Positions 44,431 through 58,876 of a stretch of DNA of 64,000 nt are shown piece by piece. Made by a program: the position numbers and the translations under genes. Numbering within the stretch: position 1 is the stretch's first letter; the number at the start of each line of letters is the position of its first letter. Source of the DNA: Epithemia pelagica (Eukaryota; Protista; Bacillariophyta); contig OX337238.1 in the NCBI GenBank assembly GCA_946965045.2, positions 1,302,001 to 1,366,000 of the forward strand, read 5' to 3'. The notes beneath the pieces were generated by a model. It was given only the letters and a program-made list of their open reading frames with translations. It was not told the origin of the DNA and made no database searches.

Positions 44431-45615
44431 CTATTCATGTGCTTCTGATACTTCCGTGGCAGATGCCTCTGGAGTAGATGCTTCCGAAGTTGACACTTCC
44501 GCAGTAGAAGATGTTCCGGAAGTCTCCGTTTGATCCAACGTGGAATCCATCTCTGATGCCACGAGAGGGCAGTGAAGAAAGCTGTTTCGACACAGCGGAC
44601 ATGGAACGGCCAGTGCTGTCTTGTTCCCTTGCGAGGCCTTGTTTCGAATGTGGCTTTTCAAGCATGTATGGGCATACTGAGCCATGCAGGTGGTGTGAAA
44701 GGCATGCATACAGTCATCCGAGTCGGACCACGACACGGATTCTCCCTTCTTGTACGAACTCAAACAAATGGCGCAGGTCGCAGGGACCAATCGATTGGCA
44801 TTGACAAACTCATCTGTGTCACTGGGCAACTTGAGGAGCAAGTTGTCGGACGCCGCCATGTCCAGCCCGCTTTGACCCAGAGAAAAATTCCAACGACGAC
44901 TACTTTTTCGGGGTGAAGAAACAGGGCTGGGTTGCTCTTCGTTCGAATTCTCTTGCTCATTGGGGCTTGACTGGTTCGCGTTGGTTTGTTGTGGTTGGGA
45001 TTTGCTATCTTCTGGAGCCTCCTCTTCTTCCGAGGCAACGGAAGTGTCATTCTCAATGGGTTGGCCCACAGACACAGAGGTGTTGTCCACAACATTTTGA
45101 CTCAACGGATTTCCTCCCAACTCCACATCGTACAGAATGCTCCCATCTATGCCCTCGAGGTCTTGTGCATCAATGTCCCCAGTGATTCGGTGTGACTCTT
45201 CTTTGGGAATCAGATCCTTGGTTTCAACACGCATAGTCGTCTTTTTCAAAAGCGCCTTGAAATCCACCTTGTTGAGGCGCTTGTCGTTGGCAGTGCTGTT
45301 GTTGTTGGTGGAGGCATTGAGAGTGGGAAGGCGGTATCTTGGGCGATAGCTTGGCATGGGATCGAGATTGTCTTCGTCCTCGCGACTGCAGCAATTGCAA
45401 GATGGTAAACACAAAAAGGCAGCAATTGCGAAGAACAAGATGAAACCCACAAATGCAGACAGTTCTTGGGGTGTCGTAGTGGCTTCTTCCGCGCTGCTAT
45501 CAGGGCCGCTATCTTGCAAAAAACGATGCATGGAGACTAATTCTTGGGAGGAAGACAATCCCAGACTGGTGTCACCAGTTCTCAACCAATGATGGCCATC
45601 CATGATATGTTCCAT
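44431..45615 (-). CDS. Transmembrane RING-H2 E3 ligase-like protein; start uncertain (ORF open to 45762)
   Basis: TM AFVGFILFFAIAAFLCL; CAICLSSY...CMHAFHTTC...CPLC. Confidence 0.82.
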   Translation of the reverse strand: MEHIMDGHHWLRTGDTSLGLSSSQELVSMHRFLQDSGPDSSAEEATTTPQELSAFVGFILFFAIAAFLCLPSCNCCSREDEDNLDPMPSYRPRYRLPTLNASTNNNSTANDKRLNKVDFKALLKKTTMRVETKDLIPKEESHRITGDIDAQDLEGIDGSILYDVELGGNPLSQNVVDNTSVSVGQPIENDTSVASEEEEAPEDSKSQPQQTNANQSSPNEQENSNEEQPSPVSSPRKSSRRWNFSLGQSGLDMAASDNLLLKLPSDTDEFVNANRLVPATCAICLSSYKKGESVSWSDSDDCMHAFHTTCMAQYAHTCLKSHIRNKASQGNKTALAVPCPLCRNSFLHCPLVASEMDSTLDQTETSGTSSTAEVSTSEASTPEASATEVSEAHE

Positions 45616-46223
45616 AACTCGAGACTCGCTGCTTTCAATGCTTTGGTTGCTTTTCTTCTTCTTGTGAGGACAATTCTTGTCACCACGCTTGCTCTGGAGT
45701 TGCACTTGTCTTTCTCCAAGTATGAGATCATTCTGTTCCGTGTCGAAGCAAACATCTGCCAACGAAAAACATCTGTCTCACATACAAAATCGACGTCAGC
45801 ACTCACCATCACATTCTAGATCTAATCGTAACATAATTCTGAAATTTACCAAAACGTACATCTACTTCCACCTACTTCCACTAGGAACTAGGACCAACCA
45901 TGAACCTTCCAAACGAAAGATCCGACAACGACCAACCCCAAGCGGTCACGGTCATAAAAATCATTCCGAACTCCCTCAAAGCGAGCGCCCCAACACGACG
46001 ACAGGTTATGAGCCCAAACGCTACCGCTGGGTGTTGATACTCTTTCTTACATACTCGCTTTGGAACATGCAAGGTTCTCTTTCTTTACTTAACCCTCGAA
46101 TCGTGGAGAGACTCAAGAAAACAAAGCCCTTGACTCCCAACCGATTGTATCCGCTACCTTTCAAGATGAACTGTGTCTCAGATTCGTTCAACTCCCACAG
46201 TTTCACGACCGCGTCACAAATCG

Positions 46224-46278
46224 GACCTGCACGAAGACAGAGCGCCACGACAGCTGCAGGATGTGGTCGCTGGGTCAT
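46224..46278 (+). repeat. 55-bp direct repeat, copy 1
   Basis: GACCTGCACGAAGACAGAGCGCCACGACAGCTGCAGGATGTGGTCGCTGGGTCAT, identical to 58822-58876. Confidence 0.97.
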
Positions 46279-46509
46279 CCCTTCGTTGTTCGACTGAGTT
46301 CAGAATGAACGTGTCGGGTAAGCCGGCAGGCTAAGGGGGTCTGGGGGTGGGAAAACAACAAAGACTGGATAAAATTTTTTTAGCTCAAGAGTCGAAATTC
46401 AGTACTTTTCACCAAAAGCTTCCCACGTTAGGCAGAAAACGCCGGGCCAACCCCTATTCAAAACCATTCAGCCCCGATGAAAAACAATGATCGAAGAACG
46501 GTCATCCAT

Positions 46510-46629
46510 TGTTTTATCAATCCATTAAATAGAAACCATTTCACCACGCTGTTCCACGTCAGAATCTCGTCTGTTTTATCAATCCATTAATAAACTCATT
46601 TTTTCACCACGCTGTTCCACGTCAGAATC
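46510..46629 (+). repeat. About 62-bp imperfect tandem duplication
   Basis: TGTTTTATCAATCCATTAA...TTCACCACGCTGTTCCACGTCAGAATC at 46510 and 46572. Confidence 0.88.
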
Positions 46630-46925
46630 ACGCCCAACGAACCAACCCACGAAACATCCCCCCACGCCATAAGGATTTTAGCAACTTTGTCACTAACACC
46701 TAGCCAAACATAGAAGCTGAAGACCTAGACTTGTAGAAATGCATCCGAAGGCAACACAAATTGGAGTAAGATCCCCCCAGACATAGGCATTCTTAGTAAG
46801 AATCTGGCGTGCCGACGAAAAATCGTACAGTATTAGCATACTAAAGTTTTTTTAGAATATAGGCGGGATTACGTTTCTACAACCGATCGTACCCATTCAC
46901 TTTCTCCGTTCCTCGTACTTTCCGA

Positions 46926-47762
46926 TTAGACGAGATCCACACGCGGAAAATAGTTCAAGTACTGATGTTCCTGTACAACGGCATCCATCAATCCCACGTT
47001 AAATTCAAGCTCCAATGTCACGATAGCATTGTCGTCGAAAATCGTTTCAGCCACAGTCGCATTAATGCCCAATTGGTCGCTCGTCCCCGATTTTTTGAGA
47101 ATCATGAAACCAGGGTCAACCCCCGGTAGGTAGGTCTTGTACAACTCAGCCATCACATCACGAATCTCCCAGAAACGATTAACATGAACAATCAACTCAC
47201 CCATCAAATTGTTGGTCTTGACACGGCAAGGGAGCCAGTCGTGAGATGGACTACCAAACGTGACAGGGCGTTGAATACCAGACGGAAAGCGAATACGAAA
47301 TCCTCCCTCAATCGTCGACAACTTGTCAATCGGAAAGGGCCTGGACGTAGTAGGCGGACGAAAATAGATCCTGTAGCTACCCTTCAATACCAAATCTTGC
47401 TCAACCGTAGGCAATCCCCAGCTGTGTCCCTCACTCGAATCCACTGACCACCGAACTCGCATGATTCGTCCGTCATGACCAAGAGACTCACCACCATCGA
47501 TCACCTGGTTTGTCTGTTCATCTGCCAAGCCAATCAAAGTTTCCGGAACCTCCAACGCTTCGGAAACACGAAGCCGAATGACGTCGAGTGGAGTGTCTTG
47601 CATGCACATTGCACCGAATCCCCACGTCGGCGAAACTTTAACAATAAACTGCGCCATCTCGTCGTCGGCCCCAACAACGAAGTGCCGCGACGGCAAAACA
47701 ACCAACTGAACCATAGTCTTGACAACTGAGGTAAGTGCACAAAAGCAGACTGTGGTGGACAC
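46926..47762 (-). CDS. Protein with two predicted ubiquitin-like (beta-grasp) domains; start uncertain
   Basis: QFIVKV...DTPLDVIRLRVSEALEVPETLIGL...QVIDGGESL and PCRVKT...IRDVMAELY...GVDPGFMIL...QLGINATVAETIFDDNAIVTLEL follow the ubiquitin hydrophobic pattern (by eye). Confidence 0.55.
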   Translation of the reverse strand: MSTTVCFCALTSVVKTMVQLVVLPSRHFVVGADDEMAQFIVKVSPTWGFGAMCMQDTPLDVIRLRVSEALEVPETLIGLADEQTNQVIDGGESLGHDGRIMRVRWSVDSSEGHSWGLPTVEQDLVLKGSYRIYFRPPTTSRPFPIDKLSTIEGGFRIRFPSGIQRPVTFGSPSHDWLPCRVKTNNLMGELIVHVNRFWEIRDVMAELYKTYLPGVDPGFMILKKSGTSDQLGINATVAETIFDDNAIVTLELEFNVGLMDAVVQEHQYLNYFPRVDLV

Positions 47763-47862
47763 GAAAATTTATAAGACAACTTCGTCTCTAACCTTTTCTT
47801 CTATTCTGTTACCTAAAAAACCCACCCGCAAACCGTAACCACACCTCCACGGAGGTCGTGCC

Positions 47863-48657
47863 GTGGAAACTCGTCACGGTGGACAGAAACCGACCGACAC
47901 GACAACCAACCGAAAACCCACCCAACAATCAAACACATTTCGACGACGGACCGTGCCATGGCTATATGCTACGTTGGTTGTTCCATTGTATCGTCACATG
48001 TATCCTCGTCGTGCCATCTACCGTAACCGTGCCGGCTTTTTGCGTCATCCAGGCATGCCTGGTTATCGTGCACGCACAACGATCGACGGCGGCTGTTCCT
48101 TTCAACCCGTGGATTGTTACGTGCGTGTGAGTGATACGGTCGACTTCCGTACCTGCGTAGTCAAAAAGTACTCCACGGCAATTCACGTTTTACGCACCAT
48201 TGCAAAAGAGATGCGGATTCCACTATGTGACATTCGCCTAACCAAGCAAAACGGAAAACGGATTGCTATGAAGGCATATGTGTACGAAAACGACAGCGAT
48301 CTTTCTAACGGTGCTATTACACTAGCTATGGTGATGGGAAGTCATCATGATTTCGGCGAGACTTACCTTCCCGAGAATTTTTCGCTTTCGTCAACACCAG
48401 AATGCAAACAGGAGAGCGACAATGAGCAAGACGACGAGGAAGAGGAAGACGATTCCGAAGAGGAGCTAGATGGGCAAGACCATGAGGATGATGATTCAGA
48501 AGAAGAGAAACAAGACGGGCAAGACCATGAGGACGATGATTCAGAAGAAGATGATGATTGCGTTGTGTTGGTTGACACGAACGAACAAATGGAGAGCAAT
48601 GGAGGCAAGCGAGACTCGTGCCGATCGTCGCGTTTGGTTGAAGAGGCGTATGTCTGA
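47863..48657 (+). CDS. Ubiquitin-like domain protein with an acidic tail and a SIM-like motif; start uncertain
   Basis: VDCYVRV...STAIHVLRTIAKEMRIPLCDIRLTKQNGKRI...AITLAMV; duplicated DGQDHEDDDSEE tract followed by DDDCVVLVD. Confidence 0.55.
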   Translation: METRHGGQKPTDTTTNRKPTQQSNTFRRRTVPWLYATLVVPLYRHMYPRRAIYRNRAGFLRHPGMPGYRARTTIDGGCSFQPVDCYVRVSDTVDFRTCVVKKYSTAIHVLRTIAKEMRIPLCDIRLTKQNGKRIAMKAYVYENDSDLSNGAITLAMVMGSHHDFGETYLPENFSLSSTPECKQESDNEQDDEEEEDDSEEELDGQDHEDDDSEEEKQDGQDHEDDDSEEDDDCVVLVDTNEQMESNGGKRDSCRSSRLVEEAYV

Positions 48658-49266
48658 TTGTTGCGGCTCGTCTCCAGTTGCGGCGGATCAAGAAACCAAA
48701 CACCATTGTTTTTTGACGTGAAAAATTGAGTACCTTTCCGCCGTCTGCGTCTTTACCACGTCTCAATTTAGGTGACAGTAGTTCCTTTGCATTCATCTTC
48801 TTGTTCTTTTCCATAGGGATCTTCTTGTTGGGATCTTCTTGTTCATTTCCATAGGGAGTGAGAGCCAAATGGACAACGGAACTTGAGAAAGTAGCACAAT
48901 CGTCCAACAATAAGTTTTGGGAACCAATCCTTGCAATGCCACTGGTGCTGGTTTGACTGTGGTGATTGCAAATGAGGTTGAAACACCAGCGGTAGACGAT
49001 GTGGCTTGGCTTCTTCTCTTAAAGCTACCTCGAAACGATCGACTTCGACCGCTCTTGTTGTTCCGCCCAACAGTGCTGTCATGTGCAGAGCGAGTGGAAA
49101 ATGAAAGTAGGAGAATCACCGCGAATCGCATTGAAGGACAACCACCTGTATCTGTATGCAACCCTATAAGCACGAAACACTTGCGGCGCCGGCCTTAAGA
49201 CTTAAAGATTAGATTACTACAACAACTAATCAAAGGCCAATCTCTCCGTGCTCTTCATACAAGACC

Positions 49267-50147
49267 TCAGCCTTGAGTCATGCCGGGATATCCGAACTTG
49301 AAGCGCGCGACATTCGAATAACGACCGTTACGGTCGACGCTGAAAACCGAGTCATGTTCCACGTGTTCACCACCTTCACCACCGTCAAAAAACTGGGAAT
49401 AAAAATCCGTCGTGGGACTCCCTTCCTCGGCCAAGTAGCTATCGATTATTTCCGCCACGTGCTCATCTGTAAATAGATGATCAAGCGCGCGAGGCGGGCT
49501 CTGAGTGTGGTCGAACTCCGCCTTGTAAATATAGTCCTTTTCCCAAGTAATTTTGGGGTTCTCATTGTCCGCGCGCTCAAGAATCTCGATTAGCTTCTCC
49601 GCGAATTCTTTCTTGAGCTGCGCGTGTGCAGTGTTATCAACCAACGGATCGTGCTCGGTAGGCGGGCACGCGACAACACATGGCCAGAAAAAAACACCTT
49701 GGTTCGGCTTGGGGGGGCCCTTCACCAACGGAAGGTTCTTTTCGCGCGACACACGACGGTGTAGGGTCGTGATGCGCATGTCATACGATTCGAGCTCGCC
49801 TTGCGCACTATTGAGAATTTCGTCAGTGACTGGCTTCAGATATCCCGATTCTTCAACACCCGCCTTCTGAAGCTTAAGATACCCAACAATAAACGCTCCC
49901 TTCGGACCACACTGTTCGAGGTGAACTTCCGTCACCTGTGGCCCAGCCGCAGATGCACGGACGTCCTTCACTTTCTTCTTCCCTTTCGAAGCAAATGGAC
50001 TCCTCTTGTGCTTAACGGGAGTAACCACTCTGTGTGCACCCTGGGACACATCAGATGTTTCTGTTGCGTTGGTCTGCAAAAATGGGGACGGTAAGTAAGC
50101 GCCGGGCCAAGCACCATGGTTATTGCACGACGAACGGAACTCACCAT
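49267..50147 (-). CDS. Orphan protein of about 269 aa; first coding exon is ATG only
   Basis: ATG 50147-50145, intron 50144-50074 (gtgagt...ttgcag), then TNATETS; basic NLS-like KHKR...KGKKKVK followed by a globular-looking region. Confidence 0.7.
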
Positions 50148-50330
50148 GCTGTCTTACTCAACTTTCTCCAGATAAGACACCAATTGTTCTCAGCTGGATT
50201 TATGAGATCAACAGGAAATGAATGCTGTTATGGTTGATTGTCGTGCCATCTCCATCAGTCCATTAACGTCGAATCCAGGTCGAGTCGTACCGTGGACTGC
50301 AACGGTCCATTTATGTCATCATCAGGACAC

Positions 50331-50622
50331 ACAACAATTTACACACATACCCAACAATCAACCACGAATGCAGCAGCGTGAATCACCGGGCGAAGTGCCA
50401 ATGCATTCGGAGACACCACAAACAGCACACAGATTCAACAATCAACCACGACCGCAAGAGGACCGTGGAACACAACCGACAACAATTTTCACACATACCC
50501 AACAATCAACCACGAATGCAGCAGCGTGAACCACCCGACGAAGTGCCAATGCAATCGGAGACACCACAAACAACAACAGATTCAACAATCAACCACGACC
50601 GCAAGAGGACCGTGGAACACAA
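50331..50622 (+). repeat. Two copies of a 148-bp unit, each with CAACAATCAACCACGA sub-repeats; further degenerate copies follow
   Basis: Units start at 50331 and 50479. Confidence 0.88.
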
Positions 50623-51462
50623 GAGCGTGAAACACCACGCCGTACCGGGGGAGATGCCAATGCAGACAGAGACACAACAACGCGATGCACAGCAATCAAA
50701 CTACCTAGTCCGTTCCCACCAGCCCACGGCGTGCAGTCTATTTCCACGATCTTTCAAGCACCACACATATTCAACAATCAAACACGACCGCAGCGTGAAA
50801 CACAACACTAGTACAGTCTGTGGTATTATTCTAGCGTGGTGATTAACGTAGTAGTCCGGCGTGTTAGTTGTGTGCCGTCCACGTTTTTCTAGTACATTAC
50901 GGATTGGAACTGATCAGCATCCACTCCATCCATCTTGTCTCATTATTTCTTGCTTTCATTATTTTGTTTTCCGGTGCTGGTTCACAGTTCACAGCTCACA
51001 GCATAATTTGTCGGTTGGTTGTTGGTACTTGGTACGAAGTTTATCACACGTATTGTTGTGTAACCGCGTGTTCTTGTGGCGGCTGAGTTACCACGTGTAA
51101 CCACGTGTGTTTGTGTGAAACGATCTGAGGAAGGAAGTGTGTCGCTTGATTCCGTGTGTGAGTTCTGTGTCTTTGCTAACAAAATCCGGGGAACCATCGG
51201 TGGTAACCAATCCAACCGGCAACTGGATTTCCAATCCCTAGAGATTGTTGTACACCCCCATCCCGTACCTTGAGTACAAGTAGACCGAAAGGTTGAAAAG
51301 AGGGCGATCCTTGCCAGACCGGCTGGATACCGTCAGGGGGGCGGAGTTTAAAGTACTCGACAGGTACAACTCCGCGTGCTACGGCACATCATTGCGCACT
51401 AACAAAACATCTGTCGCGGCTGTGCTCGCCACATAGTCGGTACTCTTTTCTGCATCACGGAC

Positions 51463-51613
51463 AGGGCGACTGATTCCGCGGGACCGAAACTGAATCTCGG
51501 TTGTCTTACGACATCGTCTGTCGTCGGCCGTGTGAAGAGGGCGACTGATTCGCGATCTGAACGGAAATCTGAATCTTGGTTGACCGAGGACGCCGTCTGT
51601 CGTCGGCCGTGTG
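51463..51613 (+). repeat. Two copies of an approximately 75-bp unit
   Basis: AGGGCGACTGATT...CTGAATCT...GTCTGTCGTCGGCCGTGTG at 51463 and 51538. Confidence 0.85.
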
Positions 51614-51913
51614 GAGTACGGGCAAGGGACTGGCGATCCCACAGTGATTGGGCAAGACTCAAGTATCAAGACTACAAGGACAGGCTCAGTGCGTGGATCC
51701 CTAACAGGTGAAGCTGCCAGTCACGTGACATTATTGTCTGTGATATACTGACAACCTGGATTACTACGGTGTGAGGGGCCCGCGTTTCGTAATTAGTCGG
51801 GTACTACGGCAACGCGGCTGTTGGAAAAGAGGCTTCCTCAATAGTTGTTTCTGACAACAAAGGAATTCCCGCCACAGCTTTCGTGCTTACAGCGACTTAC
51901 ACTGAGTAACATA

Positions 51914-52333
<420 letters not shown>

Positions 52334-52379
52334 CAGCGACATGCATTTTGTTTATTAAATTTTTAGCTTCATTTTAGTC

Positions 52380-55300
52380 ATGAATGCAGATTTTAGGGCA
52401 AGATCACAGGGCATTAGAAATGCAGAATCTGCGCGCAATGGGTTGTTGTACACAGACGCACAGGGCAACTCCAACGCAAAAATATGCTGTGTTTGTGACA
52501 CATTGATTCCATACGGTGATGAGAAATGCTTGACCATACAGGACATCCGTCACAAACGTTTGTGTTCTGTGTTGTCGAAGAAGAACTTGGGTTTGTTGGA
52601 GTATGGGATTAAACAGGAAGGGCAGGTTGCTATCCAGAGGCACTATACACAGCACTGTTATACGGCTAGGCGAAAGGAGTATAAGTTTCTGAACGATTTG
52701 GTTTTGTCCCCCAAATCATACCCCGCCAAAAAGGGCACAAAAGAAGGCCTTGGATGCTGTAGGGCATGTCACTCGCACCTTCTGAACATGAAAAACAAGA
52801 AAGGTGACTGCACCCCACCACGCTATGCCATTGTTAACGGACTATCGATTGGAAAGCCTCCTGTGTGTTTGACAGACCTTAATGAGGTTGAATTGGCTAT
52901 GATAGCGCCCGCTAGGACAAACAAACACATTTTTTCATTTACCGCTGGTAGCCATAAATCAATAAGGGGATGGCATTCGCTGTACTATAATGACCTTGAT
53001 TTGTTAATTGGTGTAATGAGGCAACCACACGACGACACCAGCAAGGAGAAAGCAATGATAGCTTGGGTGGGGAAGAAAACGCAGAAAAGAAGTTATACAT
53101 TCCTACAATCGCGGTGGTATTATGCGGCCCGTTTACGTCATCCCAGCGTGCAAAAGTGAGGGAAAAAACCGAAGTGAGATGGGAAAAAATGCAAAATGCA
53201 CTGATATGGTTAAAAGCAAATAACCCACTATATGCAGAATATGATCTCCCAACAGATGCAATGCTGAAACCAATTTTCCTTGACAAAGCAGAGATTGTTC
53301 CTGAATCGTCGTCAAATGTCGAGCTGGTTTTTGAAATCAATGCGGTTTTCCCGGACTCTGATGAACCCAAAACAGGTAATGGTGGGTTTGCGACTCAGCA
53401 GGAGTTCAGAAATGCTTCTGTAGAAAATTTAGTAACACCAGAGTCTGACAAGCAAGCAACATTGATATCCCGGCCAACCCCACATCTACTCCGTGATTAT
53501 GAGGGTGACAACTTGATTCGTGCGTTCCCCCTTCAGTTTCCCTACGGAATTGGCGGTCGTAATTCGGAGGGTGAATCGCGGCAGGGGGTTGGGTATCTGA
53601 AACATTTGTCTATGTTAGCCCCATCACGTTTTCATGGGGCAACCTTTATATGTGTCCTTCATAATATGTTTGAGAGAAAAAGAATGGTTGCCAATACTTT
53701 CCTTAGGGTGTCTGATTCACAAGCACAGTCGTTTCCAGATATTTCGACATAGGCAATTGAGGAGGCCTTGCGGATGATGCAGGACAACGTGTCATGTTCC
53801 ACCCCGGGATACATGTTTCTTCAAAAGTTGAGAGCGATTACTTCTTCCATGGGCCATACGTCGGGTGCAGCAAAAAGGGCCCGACAGAGAATGTTTTCGA
53901 TGATTTCGCATCATGGTTTGCCGTCTTTGTTGTTTACCATTACACCAGAGGATGCAATTAACTACAGAATCAGGGTAATGTCGACGGACGGGACAGGCGA
54001 GCGTCCGCCACCCGATCCATTCACTTGTGATTTCAGTGAACTTGCAAAATATGCTAAGGAATGTAAGGAAATTAGGGTTGATAATCCAGGGCTGTGTGCA
54101 TTTGATTTTGAGAATGTACTCCGGATTACAATCGCACATTTGATAGGGTGGGACGAAACTGAACAGAAAAACAAACCCTGCTTTGGAATATTTGGAGACA
54201 TAAGTGGGTGGTGTTACGCAGTTGAGGAACAGGGACAAAAAACCCTACATGCACATTTTCTGCTGTGGGTGAAAGATTGGGCAAAATTGCTAAATGGGCT
54301 ATCGGATGAAAGCCTCAGGGATACGTTCAAGAAGCAAATGGAGAAATATGTGTCAGCCGTGTCAAGTGCGGAATTGCATGGTAACGATTGTCAACCGGTG
54401 TGCACAAATGATGGCTGCTCTGGGTCTGTCTTAGAGCACTGCAGTGCGCAGGACTTGCGAAATCTCCGTACACGGGCTGGAAAGACGGCTTTCGGTGGGA
54501 AACAAATTATGAAGTGTGGGACTTGTGACAAAGGCTACTCAAGTGAGGATCTGGTAAAAATCCTACTTGACCCAATGTTTTCTCTGCAGGGGGGAGACGA
54601 TGAACCGTTTTGGCCACATGTTTCTTCACAACACACAAAATATCAGCTACTTATGGAGTTTGCATTGATGCGGCATAATCATCCGTTTGTTCCGAAGATC
54701 CTCGACGATAAACAAGCTGCAAGGTTTGTCGCAGCTTTGAGGAACCTACATAATTCGAATCACTGTACAGCATGTTTCAAAAAAGGGGGAGAATGCCGGA
54801 TGAAGATTCCCAACCTTCCCTTTGAAAAAACCACTTTGGTTTTTGATGAGCATTACACTAATTGGTACGACTGGAAAGGGAACAACCGTGCACGACAGCT
54901 TTTCCATGTAGGTCATAAGCGTTCCAGAGCAGATGTTATGATGAATATCCATAATCGTGCGGCAAGTAATCTGTTTGCTTGTAACACCAATGTGGTTGCG
55001 GGTGTCGATGGTGGTAGTGTCATGTATATGACATGCTATGTGTCGAAGAATACGCAGAATGAGGACAATGAGCATTTTGCTTCTGCCGCGAAGCATATGG
55101 TTCGTAAAATGAAGACGTATTTAAGCAACGATTTAGGGGACAATGAGAATCGGGAGAATAACACTGCCGATACTGATAATGACAGAGTCCTGCACGGTAT
55201 GCGTGGGCTAATTGGTGCTGTTTTGCTTTCTACGGGGGCACACGTATGCAGTGCACCAATGGCAGCGTTTTTGTTGAGGAATGAGTCTCGTTTTGGGTTT

Positions 55301-58093
55301 TCGCATGAATTTGCATATGTTGATCTCAGGGATTTTGAGTCAGACAAACTTGAGAAGTTTTCGTGTGATGCCTATGACGGCGAGGTTTTCCTGAAATCGT
55401 CTGTGGCTGATTACTTATATAGGCCACATGATTTAGAGGGTGTGTGTCTTTATGACTTCCTCTGCAGTTATTCTGTTGGGCGTGCGACCTCTAAAAACCG
55501 TGGAATGGAGTGGGTAGCAGAGCATCCGTCGCGGGGTAATTTGGTGTTGAAAAAAAATAAGAAAGACAAAATTCCACTTATTTCCTTTCTGGATTTTGTT
55601 GATACAAAATTTTTTGGGGACCGGTCAATTGACAATGTTGATGCATCGGGAGATGTTGTTCTTGATTCTGGTTTGGCAGCCATGGAATCTTATGCAAAGA
55701 AGGCCTGCCTTCTTTTTTACCCCTTTTGGCAGACAGGGGATCTTAGATCAGGGAACGGGAGATATCTGGGGAAATTCCAGCAGGGTTTGGCAGGTGGTAT
55801 CATTTTAAAACAGCATTTGACGGTTCTTTCAAACATACAAGACTGTCGTAATAGTCTTAATTGCGGGAGACCGAGCGATTCTCTAGAAAGAGTGACAGAG
55901 CAACCATCGCTTGTTGTTGGTGATGCAAGTGATTCTGAGGAAGAGTGCGAAACAGGAATCGACCCTGGCATGGATGCAGTTTTTGATGAATTGATTTCGT
56001 GCCTGGATGTGAGTCCGCCGTTGTTAAGAAACGCTGATGGATTGTTGGCAGTTGATAGCAGGTTTATTCGGTCATGTGGGACAAACAAATGTGGTGAAAA
56101 CTTGGTGGTCTGTCCGGAGTTGCCTGACTCGTCGCCATCAGTGTTTCGTGTCAGTTTTGATGAGCAGGTAGACAGTGCTACCTTTGTACAGCATGCAAGT
56201 GTGGATGAGGAGGTATTTGAATCAAGAAGAATCACTTATAGAAGTTTGCATGAACTGTCTGTCCGTTTTCGTGAGCGTGTGATGGGTGTAGATGCTAACA
56301 GTCACCTGCAGGCAACTGGGACATTGGAGAATATTCGGGCGTATGCGGATGTGTGTTTTAGATCAGATGTGGATCAAAAAAGAGCTTTTGAGTCAATAGT
56401 AGCTGCGTTTGTGCTGGAATTATATAAGGAGGCAAATAGAACACAAGCAGCAGCCGACTCCGAAGATGAACTGGAGGCAAACCACCAGAATACGAGGTTT
56501 CTTAGTTTACGCAAAAAAGAATTGGAAAAAGTGAATAGAGGTCATCAATACATTGCGTTCCTTTCTGGTGCAGGTGGTACGGGGAAAAGCCATGTTTTAA
56601 AATCGGTTGTCCGATATGCCAAAAGCATGTGCCGCAATTTGAGTGTTAAGTACGACAAGCGGACTATTGTTGTGACCGCGCTTACTGGTGCGGCTGCTGT
56701 TGGTATAAATGGTGAAACAACCCATAATGCCTGTGCTATAAATCGAGAGGTTGATGGAGAGGTCGAGGAGTGGACAAATGCGTATATGTTGGTTGTGGAT
56801 GAAATTTCGTTTGCATCCAAAGATGTGCTTATAAGTCTGCATCATAAACTGCGTGAGATCAAAGAAAATGCAACTGCCCGATATGGAGGAATTCCTGTGT
56901 TATTTGCTGGAGATTTTACGCAGTTGAAACCCGTGAAAGGATACCCCTTGTTTGTGTATAAGGATCTTGAACATTGGTATGAATGGGTACATACGTTTAT
57001 GGAGCTTCGAACTAATCATAGATTCGTCGACGATCCAGATTACGGTGAACTGCTTTCAAGGTATAGAGATATTGGGCCTGATGCAATAGATCTGGATACA
57101 TTAAATACACGTGTTGTTGGTAGTCCACGGGGGCCACGTGAGAGCGACATACCGTCTACGGCAGATTATGCCACAAAGTCCAACATTGATCGTGCGGCTA
57201 TTAACGATGCCATCTTTTGCAAACATTTAACAGAAACACATTCAAAGGATCCGGAAAGGGACCCCCCTTTGCATACGATTTGCGTTCGTGCGTCTGACTT
57301 GCGTTGGAAGAAGCCAAAGACGAGAAGAGACTATGTGGACTTTAATTCGGCCAGTAAAGACATGTTATATGCGTATTGTGGTGAGGGACATGTTAAGAGT
57401 AAAGATAATAAGCATTACGACCCATTGTTGAAATTTTACTATGGTCGTCCATTGATGATTAATGACAATATCGATGTTGAGAGGTGTGTTGCTAATGGGG
57501 CAATGTGCACTTTCCGTGAAGTTGTGTTGATGCCAGGAGTTACAGTTGGTGATATGGAGAAGATATGTATTGATGGCTACTTTGTTTGGTGTGTCAGTGT
57601 GTCACAAGTTCAGGGTTTGAGAGTGACAATGCAAGATGGTGTTGAAGGTTTCGTAGTGAATTTGGAGGCTACAAAAGTTACAGTGACTGTTCAGTTTCTT
57701 CTGCCGGGATTTGGTAGGAATGTGAGGATAAAGAAGACTATGAGGCTGAAGCAGTTTCCGATTAATGTATCAAATGCACGAACAGGACATAAATTGCAGG
57801 GAAGGTCGTTGCGTCATTTGGTGATTAGTTCGTGGGACTATACGGATAATTGGGTGTATGTGTGTTTGTCTCGTTGTGCTACTTTGAATGGTTTGTTTTT
57901 GCGGCAGCCGTTAAATTTGGACAAAACAAGAGGCATTTCAGAAGAGTGTGCGAGATTCTATGAGTTGTTCAGGGAGACTAAACAGCTACCTGAAAAGTTG
58001 TTCTGTTTGAGGAGGAAAGGGGATAGTACCGCTTTCGATGTTTTTTTATGGAGAGAATTGGACGGCGGTTTTGCAGTTGTCCTTGGATGTTGA
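52380..58093 (+). pseudogene. Helitron Rep/helicase transposase (HUH Rep plus PIF1 helicase) with a frameshift near 53000-53100 and TAG at 53750-53752
   Basis: N-terminal Cys cluster and PPRYAIVNG; Rep motifs PSLLFTITP, VEEQGQKTLHAHFLLW, YMTCYVSK; helicase GAGGTGKS, VVDEISF, AGDFTQLKPV, TGHKLQGRSL, YVCLSR; 53768..58093 is an unbroken 1441-aa ORF. Confidence 0.93.
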
Positions 58094-58623
58094 AATGATG
58101 GTCAAGTTGGTGGCAAGGCATCCATTGTTGTGTTTCTTTCGTTAAATTGATTTGGTCATGTGAGCGGGTAGACAGGGGTCTTGAGTGTTGCTGCATGGTT
58201 TGGATGGCACGCTTGAAATTTAATTTATTCTCCTAGTCATGATTGTTATGGAACTTTAGAGTCACATCTCATAGTGGGGGGATTTCAAGTTGTTTTGATC
58301 TACTCATTCCACGTCTTGTTTTGACGTGGACCGACGTGGTGAGGTGGTTGTGATTTATTGCGGACGCCGGCCCCAGCCGTCATTGGAGGTATGGGTGGGT
58401 CAGGTTGGCGTGGTAGGTTATGAGCCCTTTTATGTTTGGGTGATCGTTGAACTCAGACGTTCCATCCCGAAGGGTACTGTCTGTCGTGCGTACGTCGTGT
58501 CGCGGCAGGAGTTCGGGAGCAGATGGTCAGACACGTTTGGGATTGCGCGCAACGAGCGCGCAAGCACAAGGCGCGCGCAACTTTGGTTGGAGCTAGAGTG
58601 CAGAGCATCAGCATCAGCATCAG

Positions 58624-58821: not shown

Positions 58822-58876
58822 GACCTGCACGAAGACAGAGCGCCACGACAGCTGCAGGATGTGGTCGCTGGGTCAT
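58822..58876 (+). repeat. 55-bp direct repeat, copy 2
   Basis: Identical to 46224-46278; similarity continues CTTCGT after 2 mismatches. Confidence 0.97.

Follow-up and report, generated by a model that had tools for sequence, protein, structure and literature searches.

Predicted ubiquitin-fold proteins encoded by accessory genes of a Helitron2-type transposon in the diatom Epithemia pelagica

A Helitron2-type element with a divergent gene pair

The window analysed here is a stretch of 64,000 nucleotides from the Epithemia pelagica genome (GenBank assembly GCA_946965045.2, contig OX337238.1, positions 1,302,001 to 1,366,000 of the forward strand). It contains two head-to-head genes, each read from its first ATG: ORF1 (46926..47714, minus strand, 262 aa), a near-orphan in sequence that is predicted to be a tandem ubiquitin-fold protein, and ORF2 (47998..48657, plus strand, 219 aa), which combines a conserved N-terminal motif, a predicted ubiquitin-fold domain and an acidic tail. 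The initial annotation located both ORFs correctly, but relied on bacterial GTG starts and so gave their lengths as 278 and 264 aa and their spacing as about 100 bp. The first ATGs are separated by 283 bp, and their choice is backed by the ORF2 paralogues, which start at the same ATG, and by a database copy of ORF1 that is also 262 aa long. The intergenic region (47715..47997), presumed from its position between the two ATGs to be a bidirectional promoter, varies more among copies than the ORFs do (at most 7% divergence, plus indels). Three public runs hold this stretch, all from one study and all as genomic contigs (longest record about 0.5 Mb), with no RNA run among them.

The pair lies within a complete element of 12,190 bp (46290..58479, plus strand), delimited by blastn and flank comparison and bounded by a host T at 46289 and at 58480. 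Four sister copies match window positions 46289-58481 at 96-99.8% identity, and outside the element ends the DNA is unrelated, with the junction always T|T (5/5 copies). The genome holds eight copies in all; the full-length comparison covers the window copy and these four. The 5' terminus, TCGACTGAGTTCA (46290..46302, plus strand), carries at 46294-46302 the inverted complement of 58448-58456, and this repeat, shared by the 5' end and the 3' subterminus (CTGAGTTCA / TGAACTCAG), is perfect over 9 bp and reaches 11/13 when extended. As read from the sequence, the 3' end (58448..58479, plus strand) consists of the subterminal inverted repeat TGAACTCAG, a short palindrome CCCGAAGGG and the terminus ...GGGTACTG; the folding energy of the 3' hairpin is not distinctive (z -0.37).

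Downstream of the pair the element encodes a RepHel transposase (52380..58093, plus strand), in which Pfam detects DUF6570, Helitron_like_N (2e-12) and PIF1 (4e-19), that is, Rep together with a PIF1-type helicase. Insertion between T and T and inverted repetition of the 5' end at the 3' subterminus define HLE2 in the account of Helitron-like elements in PMC11417382, and the T|T target, the 9-bp inverted repeat and DUF6570 of the present element match that account. Given that Pfam finds no AP-endonuclease domain (Exo_endo_phos) in the RepHel pieces, the element is Helitron2-like and not a Helentron. The window copy of RepHel is broken by a 13-bp deletion after 53000, a GAG>TAG change at 53750-53752 and a 1-bp deletion after 57996, one lesion more than initially counted; all three are private to this copy, and the sister copies C8 and C16 retain an intact RepHel ORF of 1,886 aa. 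The element is an autonomous, recently active rolling-circle transposon of the Helitron2 type, 12.19 kb in length and present in eight copies.

Copy comparison further places at 58044..58045 the junction of a 947-bp deletion that took out ORF1', a 255-aa paralogue of ORF1 (40% identical, plus strand). This deletion is common to the window copy (C11), C8 and C16; since these copies sit at different sites, the subfamily has transposed without ORF1' in cis, and at least this paralogue is therefore dispensable in cis. A third accessory gene, ORF3 (49267..50079, minus strand), belongs to no known family, being without a match in Pfam or a usable one in a protein-atlas feature search. It has homologues at locus L035 (34% identical, between the ORF2-like gene and RepHel) and in the relic L050 (59% identical). 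An upstream RING-finger ORF (44431-45762) was considered as a member of the system and rejected, as it lies in the host flank and is absent from the other copies.

Cargo status and selective constraint

The eight genomic copies of each ORF all occur as the same divergent pair, which occupies the same position in every copy of the element (8/8) at unrelated insertion sites. The initial placement of the pair next to a Helitron transposase was right insofar as RepHel lies downstream, but the genes are inside the Helitron and not beside it. Intact homologues of ORF2, 58% and 35% identical, are found in two more diverged Helitron families, where they are head-to-head with RepHel or one gene away in 8/8 paralogue loci examined and in one ENA contig; in the simplest family the ORF2-type gene is directly head-to-head with RepHel. 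The neighbouring RepHel is 37-52% identical over its N-terminal (DUF6570) part, the part that falls within the loci compared. Across the three ORF2 subfamilies the N-terminal RxGFxxHPGxMP motif, the fold domain and the acidic tail are kept, and the SIM-like motif described below is not. Position and adjacency to RepHel bear out the earlier claim of element encoding, and ORF1 and ORF2 are almost certainly cargo of the element.

Estimates over five copies give an omega of 0.29 for ORF1 (p=0.0045), 0.30 for the fold domain of ORF2 (p 0.04) and 0.31 for RepHel (p 2e-12). ORF1 and the ORF2 fold domain are constrained as strongly as RepHel, with dN/dS about 0.3 and not near 1. These values speak against the view that the ORFs have no function and descend from gene fragments captured long ago, staying open only through the youth of the copies. 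That view draws on the high identity of the copies (96-99.8%), which would leave many ORFs open by chance, on the nucleotide divergence of ORF1, which is no lower than that of the non-coding parts of the element, and on gene capture, for which Helitrons are known (PMC11417382). However, in addition to the constraint, other RepHel families still hold intact ORF2-type genes, 35-58% identical, and no host-gene relative outside a Helitron context was found in the diatom's own genome, so that we regard inert passengers as very unlikely. An exhaustive search of 1.8 billion protein representatives returned three matches to ORF1, and this search and a word-index search together place relatives in one ENA sample only, which does not make a wider spread nil.

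The initial annotation further read the intact pair beside a lesioned RepHel as a hint of selection or domestication, the latter meaning that the host had adopted the pair and kept it beside a dead Helitron. The window pair is indeed intact against three lesions in RepHel; but since these lesions are private and two sister copies (C8 and C16) have an intact RepHel, domestication is not supported. The pair is also multi-copy and always within the element, and one or other member is broken elsewhere (an ORF2 stop in C3, an ORF1 frameshift in C10 and an internal duplication of ORF1 in C13). Moreover, with three lesions per 5.7 kb of RepHel, chance alone would be expected to spare 1.45 kb about half the time. 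Domestication is thus largely refuted and highly improbable.

Predicted folds and the acidic tail

Residues 33-120 of ORF2 (48094..48357, plus strand) are modelled by AlphaFold2 as a β-grasp domain at pLDDT 85-91. Foldseek relates this model to SUMO1, ISG15 and ubiquitin (E 5e-5, target TM 0.8), and VIA aligns it with whole chains of FAT10, SUMO1, ubiquitin and ISG15 (Z 10-10.9, 76-81 residues, rmsd ~2 Å). On these models ORF2 very probably has the ubiquitin fold. In ORF1, residues 16-97 (47424..47669, minus strand) form a predicted N-terminal β-grasp domain at pLDDT 63-76, for which VIA covers the chains of SUMO1, SUMO2 and Smt3 end to end (72-75 residues, rmsd ~2 Å) at Z 8.3-8.9, where 8-9 is middling by the tool's own description. 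A putative C-terminal β-grasp at residues 164-237 (47004..47225, minus strand) is tentative: the elements come in the order bb-a-bb-a-b at pLDDT only 50-57, Foldseek aligns ORF1 to linear di-ubiquitin over 231-236 columns, and the paralogue ORF1' has a below-threshold match to PF14560 (Ubiquitin_2, E 0.14). ORF1 as modelled is probably made of two fold domains in tandem. Thus, of the three β-grasp domains originally proposed, that of ORF2 is confident, the first of ORF1 moderate and the second tentative only; structure prediction and Foldseek uphold a ubiquitin-like fold firmly in ORF2 and moderately to tentatively in ORF1.

At the sequence level the fold domains are 9-19% identical to ubiquitin and SUMO. 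Those of the window have no Pfam match at E<=10 (including PF00240, PF11976 and PF14560), and PDB profile searches with both alignments gave compositional or chance matches only. Comparison of ORF1-N, ORF1-C and the ORF2 domain by hhalign yielded nothing significant, the best being ORF1-N with ORF2 (P 0.013), aligned in the register that the topology calls for, a hint at most. It could be asked whether a shallow alignment has produced the ubiquitin fold of ORF1 as an artefact of modelling, the protein having another fold or being largely disordered. The whole model has a mean pLDDT of 49, with residues 102-174 below 50, and was built on an alignment of just 9 rows, drawn from two groups of paralogues; the middling Z and the insignificant domain-versus-domain profile comparison point the same way. 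On the other hand, the superposition spans the full length of the SUMO chains at rmsd ~2 Å, the paralogue shows its weak Ubiquitin_2 match, and independent language-model features point to Rad60-SLD/ubiquitin clusters at 0.85-0.89. We consider an artefact quite unlikely and lean towards ORF1 having the modelled ubiquitin fold.

Both ORFs lack a C-terminal di-Gly, as had been noted from the outset, and no fold domain is closed by one either: the fold of ORF2 ends in ...ITLAMVMGSHHDF and ORF1 ends in ...PRVDLV. An NGG occurs in the ORF2 tail, some 85 residues beyond the fold, and is RG in C8 and C16. Given the lack of a di-Gly after the fold, the predicted proteins would not be conjugatable. More generally, β-grasp domains have many unrelated roles, and likeness of fold is no proof of function.

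The long ORF2 tail is rich in Ser, Asp and Glu and, in agreement with the initial annotation, holds the SIM-like motif DDDCVVLVD (residues 185-193; 48550..48576, plus strand), its sole hydrophobic cluster. The form SEEDDD(S/C)VVLVD is present in 8/8 copies with VVLVD identical in all, C188 being private to the window and Ser standing in the other seven. By sequence, the motif fits the SIM pattern (V/I/L)(V/I/L)x(V/I/L) with acidic or phosphorylatable Ser flanks. VVLV is confined to the family of the window element and absent from both paralogous ORF2 subfamilies (58% and 35% identity), and the tail evolves near neutrality (omega 0.87, five copies). Over n=3 families, VVLV is seen only in company with ORF1, a weak supporting pattern for the fuller form of mimicry considered below. 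When ORF1 in full was modelled in a complex with ORF2 residues 160-219, the score was 0.00, which is no answer and evidence neither way.

The matches of the tail are compositional only and fall on acidic histone- or cargo-binding regions, which would suit a role internal to the element. The β-grasps would then be assembly modules with RepHel (for instance its DUF6570 N-terminus) or one another as partners, and the tail would be a DNA mimic or histone binder aiding the single-strand intermediate or access to chromatin. Such a role would also agree with the head-to-head placement of ORF2-type genes and RepHel in the simplest family, and with the retention of the N-terminal motif, fold domain and acidic tail, but not the SIM, across subfamilies. 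Against it, the structural neighbours are overwhelmingly modifiers themselves (SUMO, ubiquitin, ISG15, FAT10), and we judge it fairly unlikely.

Proposed function and comparison with known systems

We propose that ORF1 and ORF2 might act through non-covalent mimicry of ubiquitin or SUMO. Their fold domains would dock on readers of ubiquitin-like surfaces, such as E2s, SIM- or UIM-bearing factors, the proteasome or partners encoded by the element, and the acidic tail, with the SIM-like VVLV in the window family, would bind partners that are SUMO-like or basic. The two proteins could thereby tie the machinery of transposition to the ubiquitin/SUMO pathways of the host, as a non-enzymatic counterpart of the OTU, VTD, UCH and Ulp1 domains of other Helitron-like elements. 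This mechanism, modelled on the predicted folds, is a tentative and rather doubtful one; the account as a whole, of constrained Helitron2 accessory genes for predicted non-conjugatable ubiquitin/SUMO-fold proteins acting by mimicry, strikes us as evenly poised. Element-encoded decoys against host silencing, as first suggested for the pair, are speculation. In a fuller form of this idea, an algal Helitron2 clade would encode non-conjugatable SUMO/ubiquitin mimics, with the SIM tail of ORF2 pairing with ORF1 or with host SUMO/Ubc9 and the pair diverting SUMO-dependent silencing or repair factors, which would protect RepHel or the single-strand intermediate; we think this unlikely.

If this form of mimicry holds, these elements would achieve without an enzyme what deubiquitinase or Ulp1 domains do for other Helitrons. 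Ubiquitin-fold proteins as Helitron cargo in their own right, kept across diverged RepHel families, would form a class that domain-based cargo surveys would miss, and the two short proteins with their single candidate SIM, along with autonomous copies that are intact, offer a compact way into the connection of Helitrons with ubiquitin/SUMO. Were the proteins inert passengers, the case would be just a well-annotated young Helitron family.

The stable cargo of Helitron-like elements includes OTU, UCH, Peptidase_C48, F-box-associated and Herpes_teg_N domains, according to PMC11417382, and the VTD domains of Helitrons are active deubiquitinases/deneddylases (PMC9741609). Like OTU, VTD (Herpes_teg_N), UCH, Ulp1/Peptidase_C48 and F-box-associated cargo, ORF1 and ORF2 have a fixed position relative to RepHel and are stably carried by rolling-circle transposons, here by an HLE2, the type that holds most of these known domains (PMC11417382; PMC9741609). 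The known domains touch the ubiquitin/SUMO system, and the likeness of ORF1 and ORF2 in this respect lies in their predicted fold. Whereas known cargo, as there described, comprises enzymes or substrate adaptors that are detectable by Pfam and often fused to RepHel, ORF1 and ORF2 are small, free-standing, non-catalytic genes that sequence profiles miss and that would supply the ubiquitin-like fold itself. The passages of the HELIANO paper considered here name no ubiquitin-like domain among its 20 stable domains (PMC11417382).

By analogy only, the pair recalls the RENi proteins (Rad60, Esc2 and NIP45-NFATC2IP), in which SUMO-like domains that cannot be conjugated stand in tandem, an arrangement also predicted for ORF1, and are accompanied by SIMs and acidic or Ser-rich stretches. 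RENi proteins take part in DNA transactions linked to replication and control helicases and nucleases; their SLD2 contacts Ubc9, the SUMO E2, on its back side. However, ORF1 lacks a match to Rad60-SLD (PF11976) despite its predicted tandem fold; RENi SIMs are N-terminal to the SLDs on the same polypeptide, whereas the SIM-like motif is here on ORF2 and C-terminal to the fold; and the ORF1 and ORF2 genes are transposon-borne and multi-copy.

Type-2 UBLs (Rad23/Dsk2) and FAT10/ISG15-like tandem folds likewise present a β-grasp docking surface without conjugation, in a tandem arrangement such as that predicted for ORF1, but ORF1 and ORF2 show no sequence homology to them and lack a di-Gly as well as a UBA or any other partner domain. 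Viruses also carry ubiquitin-like genes of their own, such as baculovirus v-ubi, and viral ubiquitins can be recognised from their sequence and can be conjugated. The element described here would similarly be a mobile genetic parasite with its own ubiquitin-fold proteins, which, in contrast, are not recognisable by sequence and are predicted not to be conjugatable.

Gene pair and transposon

Read from its first ATG, ORF1 occupies 47714..46926 on the minus strand (262 aa) and ORF2 occupies 47998..48657 on the plus strand (219 aa), in agreement with the divergent open frames of the initial annotation. The gap of about 100 bp reported there becomes 283 bp from ATG to ATG; bacterial start rules on the same frames give products of 278 and 264 aa lying 100 bp apart, but the ATG-based figures are preferred because the genome is eukaryotic. 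These starts are supported by the protein database entry for ORF1 (262 aa) and by the ORF2 paralogues, all of which begin at the residue equivalent to the 47998 ATG. Pfam searches with the two proteins matched no family at E<=1 whole, nor at E<=10 domain by domain. The public runs containing the stretch are genomic assemblies only, from a single study.

The 60.5-Mb genome contains each gene eight times, in nearly identical form and invariably as the same head-to-head pair. Comparison of four sister copies (30 kb apiece) with the window gave alignments over 46289-58481 at 96.0-99.75% identity, with unrelated DNA beyond this span, and delimits an element of 12,190 bp (46290-58479). Thus, the pair, earlier placed next to a Helitron, resides inside it. 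The element starts with TCGACTGAGTTCA and ends with GGGTACTG, has a host T on either side in 5/5 copies, and its segment 46294-46302 recurs subterminally, at 58448-58456, as a perfect inverted repeat. Its transposase, RepHel, contains the Pfam domains DUF6570, Helitron_like_N and PIF1. Insertion between T and T and DUF6570 characterise group 2 of the Helitron-like elements in the HELIANO survey (PMC11417382). Given that no AP-endonuclease domain was found in RepHel, we classify the element as Helitron2-like rather than as a Helentron.

From left to right the element carries ORF1(-), ORF2(+), ORF3(-), repeats and RepHel(+), followed in the longer copies by ORF1'(+). ORF1' is intact, encodes 255 aa, shares 40% identity with its paralogue ORF1 and lies on the strand opposite to it (L010:1537-2301, L011:1534-2298 and L012:1534-2298 in sister copies); the longer copies carry mirrored paralogues at their two ends. 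A 947-bp deletion (junction 58044/58045) eliminates ORF1' from the window copy (C11) and from copies C8 and C16, and as these lie at different sites, the ORF1'-deleted subfamily went on transposing. The repeat block between ORF2 and ORF3 (48700-49080) and an extended microsatellite tract preceding RepHel (51845-52366) differ in length among copies, by tens up to hundreds of bases. The element is bracketed by a perfect 55-bp direct repeat (46224-46278 and 58822-58876), both units of which lie beyond the true ends: the left one stops 11 bp short of the 5' end, and the right one begins 342 bp past the 3' end. Imperfect similarity extends ~10 bp beyond each; a duplicated target or 3' read-through (transduction) may have produced the repeat. 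A RING-finger ORF immediately upstream of the element (44431-45762, minus strand; zf-RING_2, E 2e-5, slightly under the Pfam cut-off) was rejected as cargo, being part of the host flank and absent from other copies.

Selection and damage among copies

Distinct single-base codon variants were counted across five aligned copies; the numbers are small and the test has no transition-bias model. RepHel shows 73 synonymous and 81 non-synonymous variants (omega 0.31, p 2e-12), ORF1 11 and 11 (omega 0.29, p 0.0045), residues 1-120 of ORF2 6 and 6 (omega 0.30, p 0.04), and the ORF2 tail 4 and 15 (omega 0.87, not significant); pairwise Nei-Gojobori values are consistent with these counts. As purifying selection is visible among transposon copies, the differences arose in active lineages. 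By these counts ORF1 and the folded portion of ORF2 behave as working element genes, like the transposase. That the pair consists of inert passengers is quite unlikely in light of this constraint.

The initial annotation also noted two lesions in RepHel beside an intact pair and took this as a hint of selection or domestication. The lesions are real but number three, namely a 13-bp deletion after 53000, GAG>TAG at 53750-53752 and a 1-bp deletion after 57996, all private to the window copy and absent from the four compared copies. In C8 and C16 both small genes are intact and RepHel is a single uninterrupted frame of 1,886 aa, indicating that the family was autonomous until very recently or still is. 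In other copies it is the small genes that are damaged: a stop interrupts ORF2 in C3, and ORF1 has a frameshift in C10 and an in-frame internal tandem duplication of about residues 28-144 in C13 (C13:2243551-2244735; open frame of 398 aa, of which the protein database entry, starting at the ATG, has 380 aa). With three lesions per 5.7 kb of RepHel, finding 1.45 kb undamaged by chance is roughly a coin toss. Domestication of the pair by the host is therefore unsupported, and we consider it highly improbable.

Distribution and predicted folds

ORF2 has two further subfamilies in the same genome, at 58% and 35% identity. In the former, the gene stands head-to-head with RepHel; the compared loci include only the N-terminal (DUF6570) part of this RepHel, which is 37-52% identical to that of the window. 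An ENA contig repeats this arrangement, with neighbors annotated by Pfam as DUF6570/Helitron_like_N and PIF1. The latter has the order ORF2-like(-), ORF3-like(+, 34% identity), RepHel(+). RepHel sequence lies within about 1.5 kb in 8/8 ORF2-paralogue loci examined (2 further hits fall outside this set). All subfamilies keep the folded domain, an acidic tail of Ser/Asp/Glu and an N-terminal motif (R11, G13, F14, H17-P18-G19, M20-P21). This motif (residues 9-24, 48024-48069; RxRxGFxxHPG(x)MP) is invariant even in the subfamily at 35% identity, although the model shows it as disordered (pLDDT ~40); it matches no known motif and may be a short linear binding motif.

The distribution of ORF1 is much narrower. 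An HMM of ORF1 and ORF1' recovered only the element's own family and one decayed fragment from the genome, and an exhaustive scan of 1.8 billion representative proteins returned three, all from one ENA sample. The third accessory gene, ORF3 (49267-50079, minus strand), has no family and no usable atlas match; its homologues lie between the ORF2-like gene and RepHel of another Helitron family (L035:2292-3161, 34% identical) and in an ENA relic (L050:8421-9198, 59% identical). The homology begins upstream of the first ATG, with an intron or a lost start as options for the 5' end. The decayed relic (L050:8421-10273, contig ctg1298l) combines the ORF3-like gene with the N-terminal domain only of an ORF1-like gene (P0004, 51% identity); the two have no intervening ORF2, and RepHel is missing within 10 kb.

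The three beta-grasp domains originally proposed hold up to differing degrees in structure models. Residues 33-120 of ORF2 (9-row alignment; pLDDT 85-91; order strand-strand-helix-strand-strand-strand) are firmly predicted to adopt this fold: the best Foldseek matches in PDB are SUMO1, ISG15 and ubiquitin (E 5e-5, target TM ~0.8), VIA-align superposes 76-81 residues on entire FAT10, SUMO1, ubiquitin and ISG15 domains (Z 10-10.9, rmsd ~2 A), and the ESM-Atlas shape search finds mainly ubiquitin/Rad60-SLD clusters. The ORF1 model is weak overall (mean pLDDT 49); the prediction is fair for residues 16-97 (pLDDT 63-76; superposition on SUMO, Z 8.3-8.9) and tentative for residues 164-237 (pLDDT 50-57), which show the same order of elements; Foldseek aligns both halves with linear di-ubiquitin (231-236 columns). 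ORF1' has a sub-threshold Ubiquitin_2 match (E 0.14) and, as a lead only, language-model features of ORF1 are nearest to Rad60-SLD/ubiquitin clusters (0.85-0.89); a modelling artefact for ORF1 is unlikely. With no sequence-profile match and 9-19% identity to solved ubiquitin-like proteins, the predicted assignment is structural only. In keeping with the lack of a C-terminal di-Gly noted initially, no di-Gly follows the fold in any of the predicted domains, so these are not conjugatable modifiers.

Acidic tail and related systems

In SUMO-interacting motifs (SIMs), acidic and phosphorylatable residues flank a hydrophobic core. SEEDDD(C/S)VVLVD (ORF2 residues 182-193), the sole hydrophobic cluster in the ~95-residue acidic tail, conforms to this pattern, and VVLVD is the same in 8/8 element copies. 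This much of the earlier SIM-like reading stands; however, only the window copy has the Cys (Ser in the other 7), and the motif is missing from both other ORF2 subfamilies. The five-codon invariance is not significant because the tail is near-neutral (estimated ~0.46 by chance). Among the three families compared, the motif occurs solely in that also carrying the predicted tandem SUMO-like ORF1.

ORF1 and ORF2 are thus conserved and constrained transposon genes, whose products are predicted to combine ubiquitin/SUMO-type folds lacking conjugation signals with an acidic tail. They might act by non-covalent mimicry or docking within the host ubiquitin/SUMO system, a possibility we advance tentatively. 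The acidic tail kept across subfamilies would also suit the main alternative, which we hold to be slightly less likely: the folds would serve as assembly modules internal to the element, and the tail as a histone or DNA mimic. Ubiquitin/SUMO mimicry would have its parallel in the OTU, VTD, UCH and Ulp1 domains of other Helitron-like elements (PMC11417382). Helitron VTDs are proven deubiquitinases/deneddylases, proposed to shield transposition proteins from degradation (PMC9741609).

Among the full texts searched, no paper connects Helitrons to Rad60, SIMs or SUMO-like domains, and the 20 stably carried domains of HELIANO include none named as ubiquitin-like in the sections drawn on (PMC11417382). 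The closest analogues are the RENi proteins, with tandem SUMO-like domains plus SIMs. ORF1 and ORF2 were rejected as RENi members on every testable feature: they have no Rad60-SLD profile match, and their SIM-like motif lies on the other polypeptide and at another position. Helitron accessory genes touching the ubiquitin system are known, and ORF1 and ORF2, with their putative function, would represent a variation on that theme.
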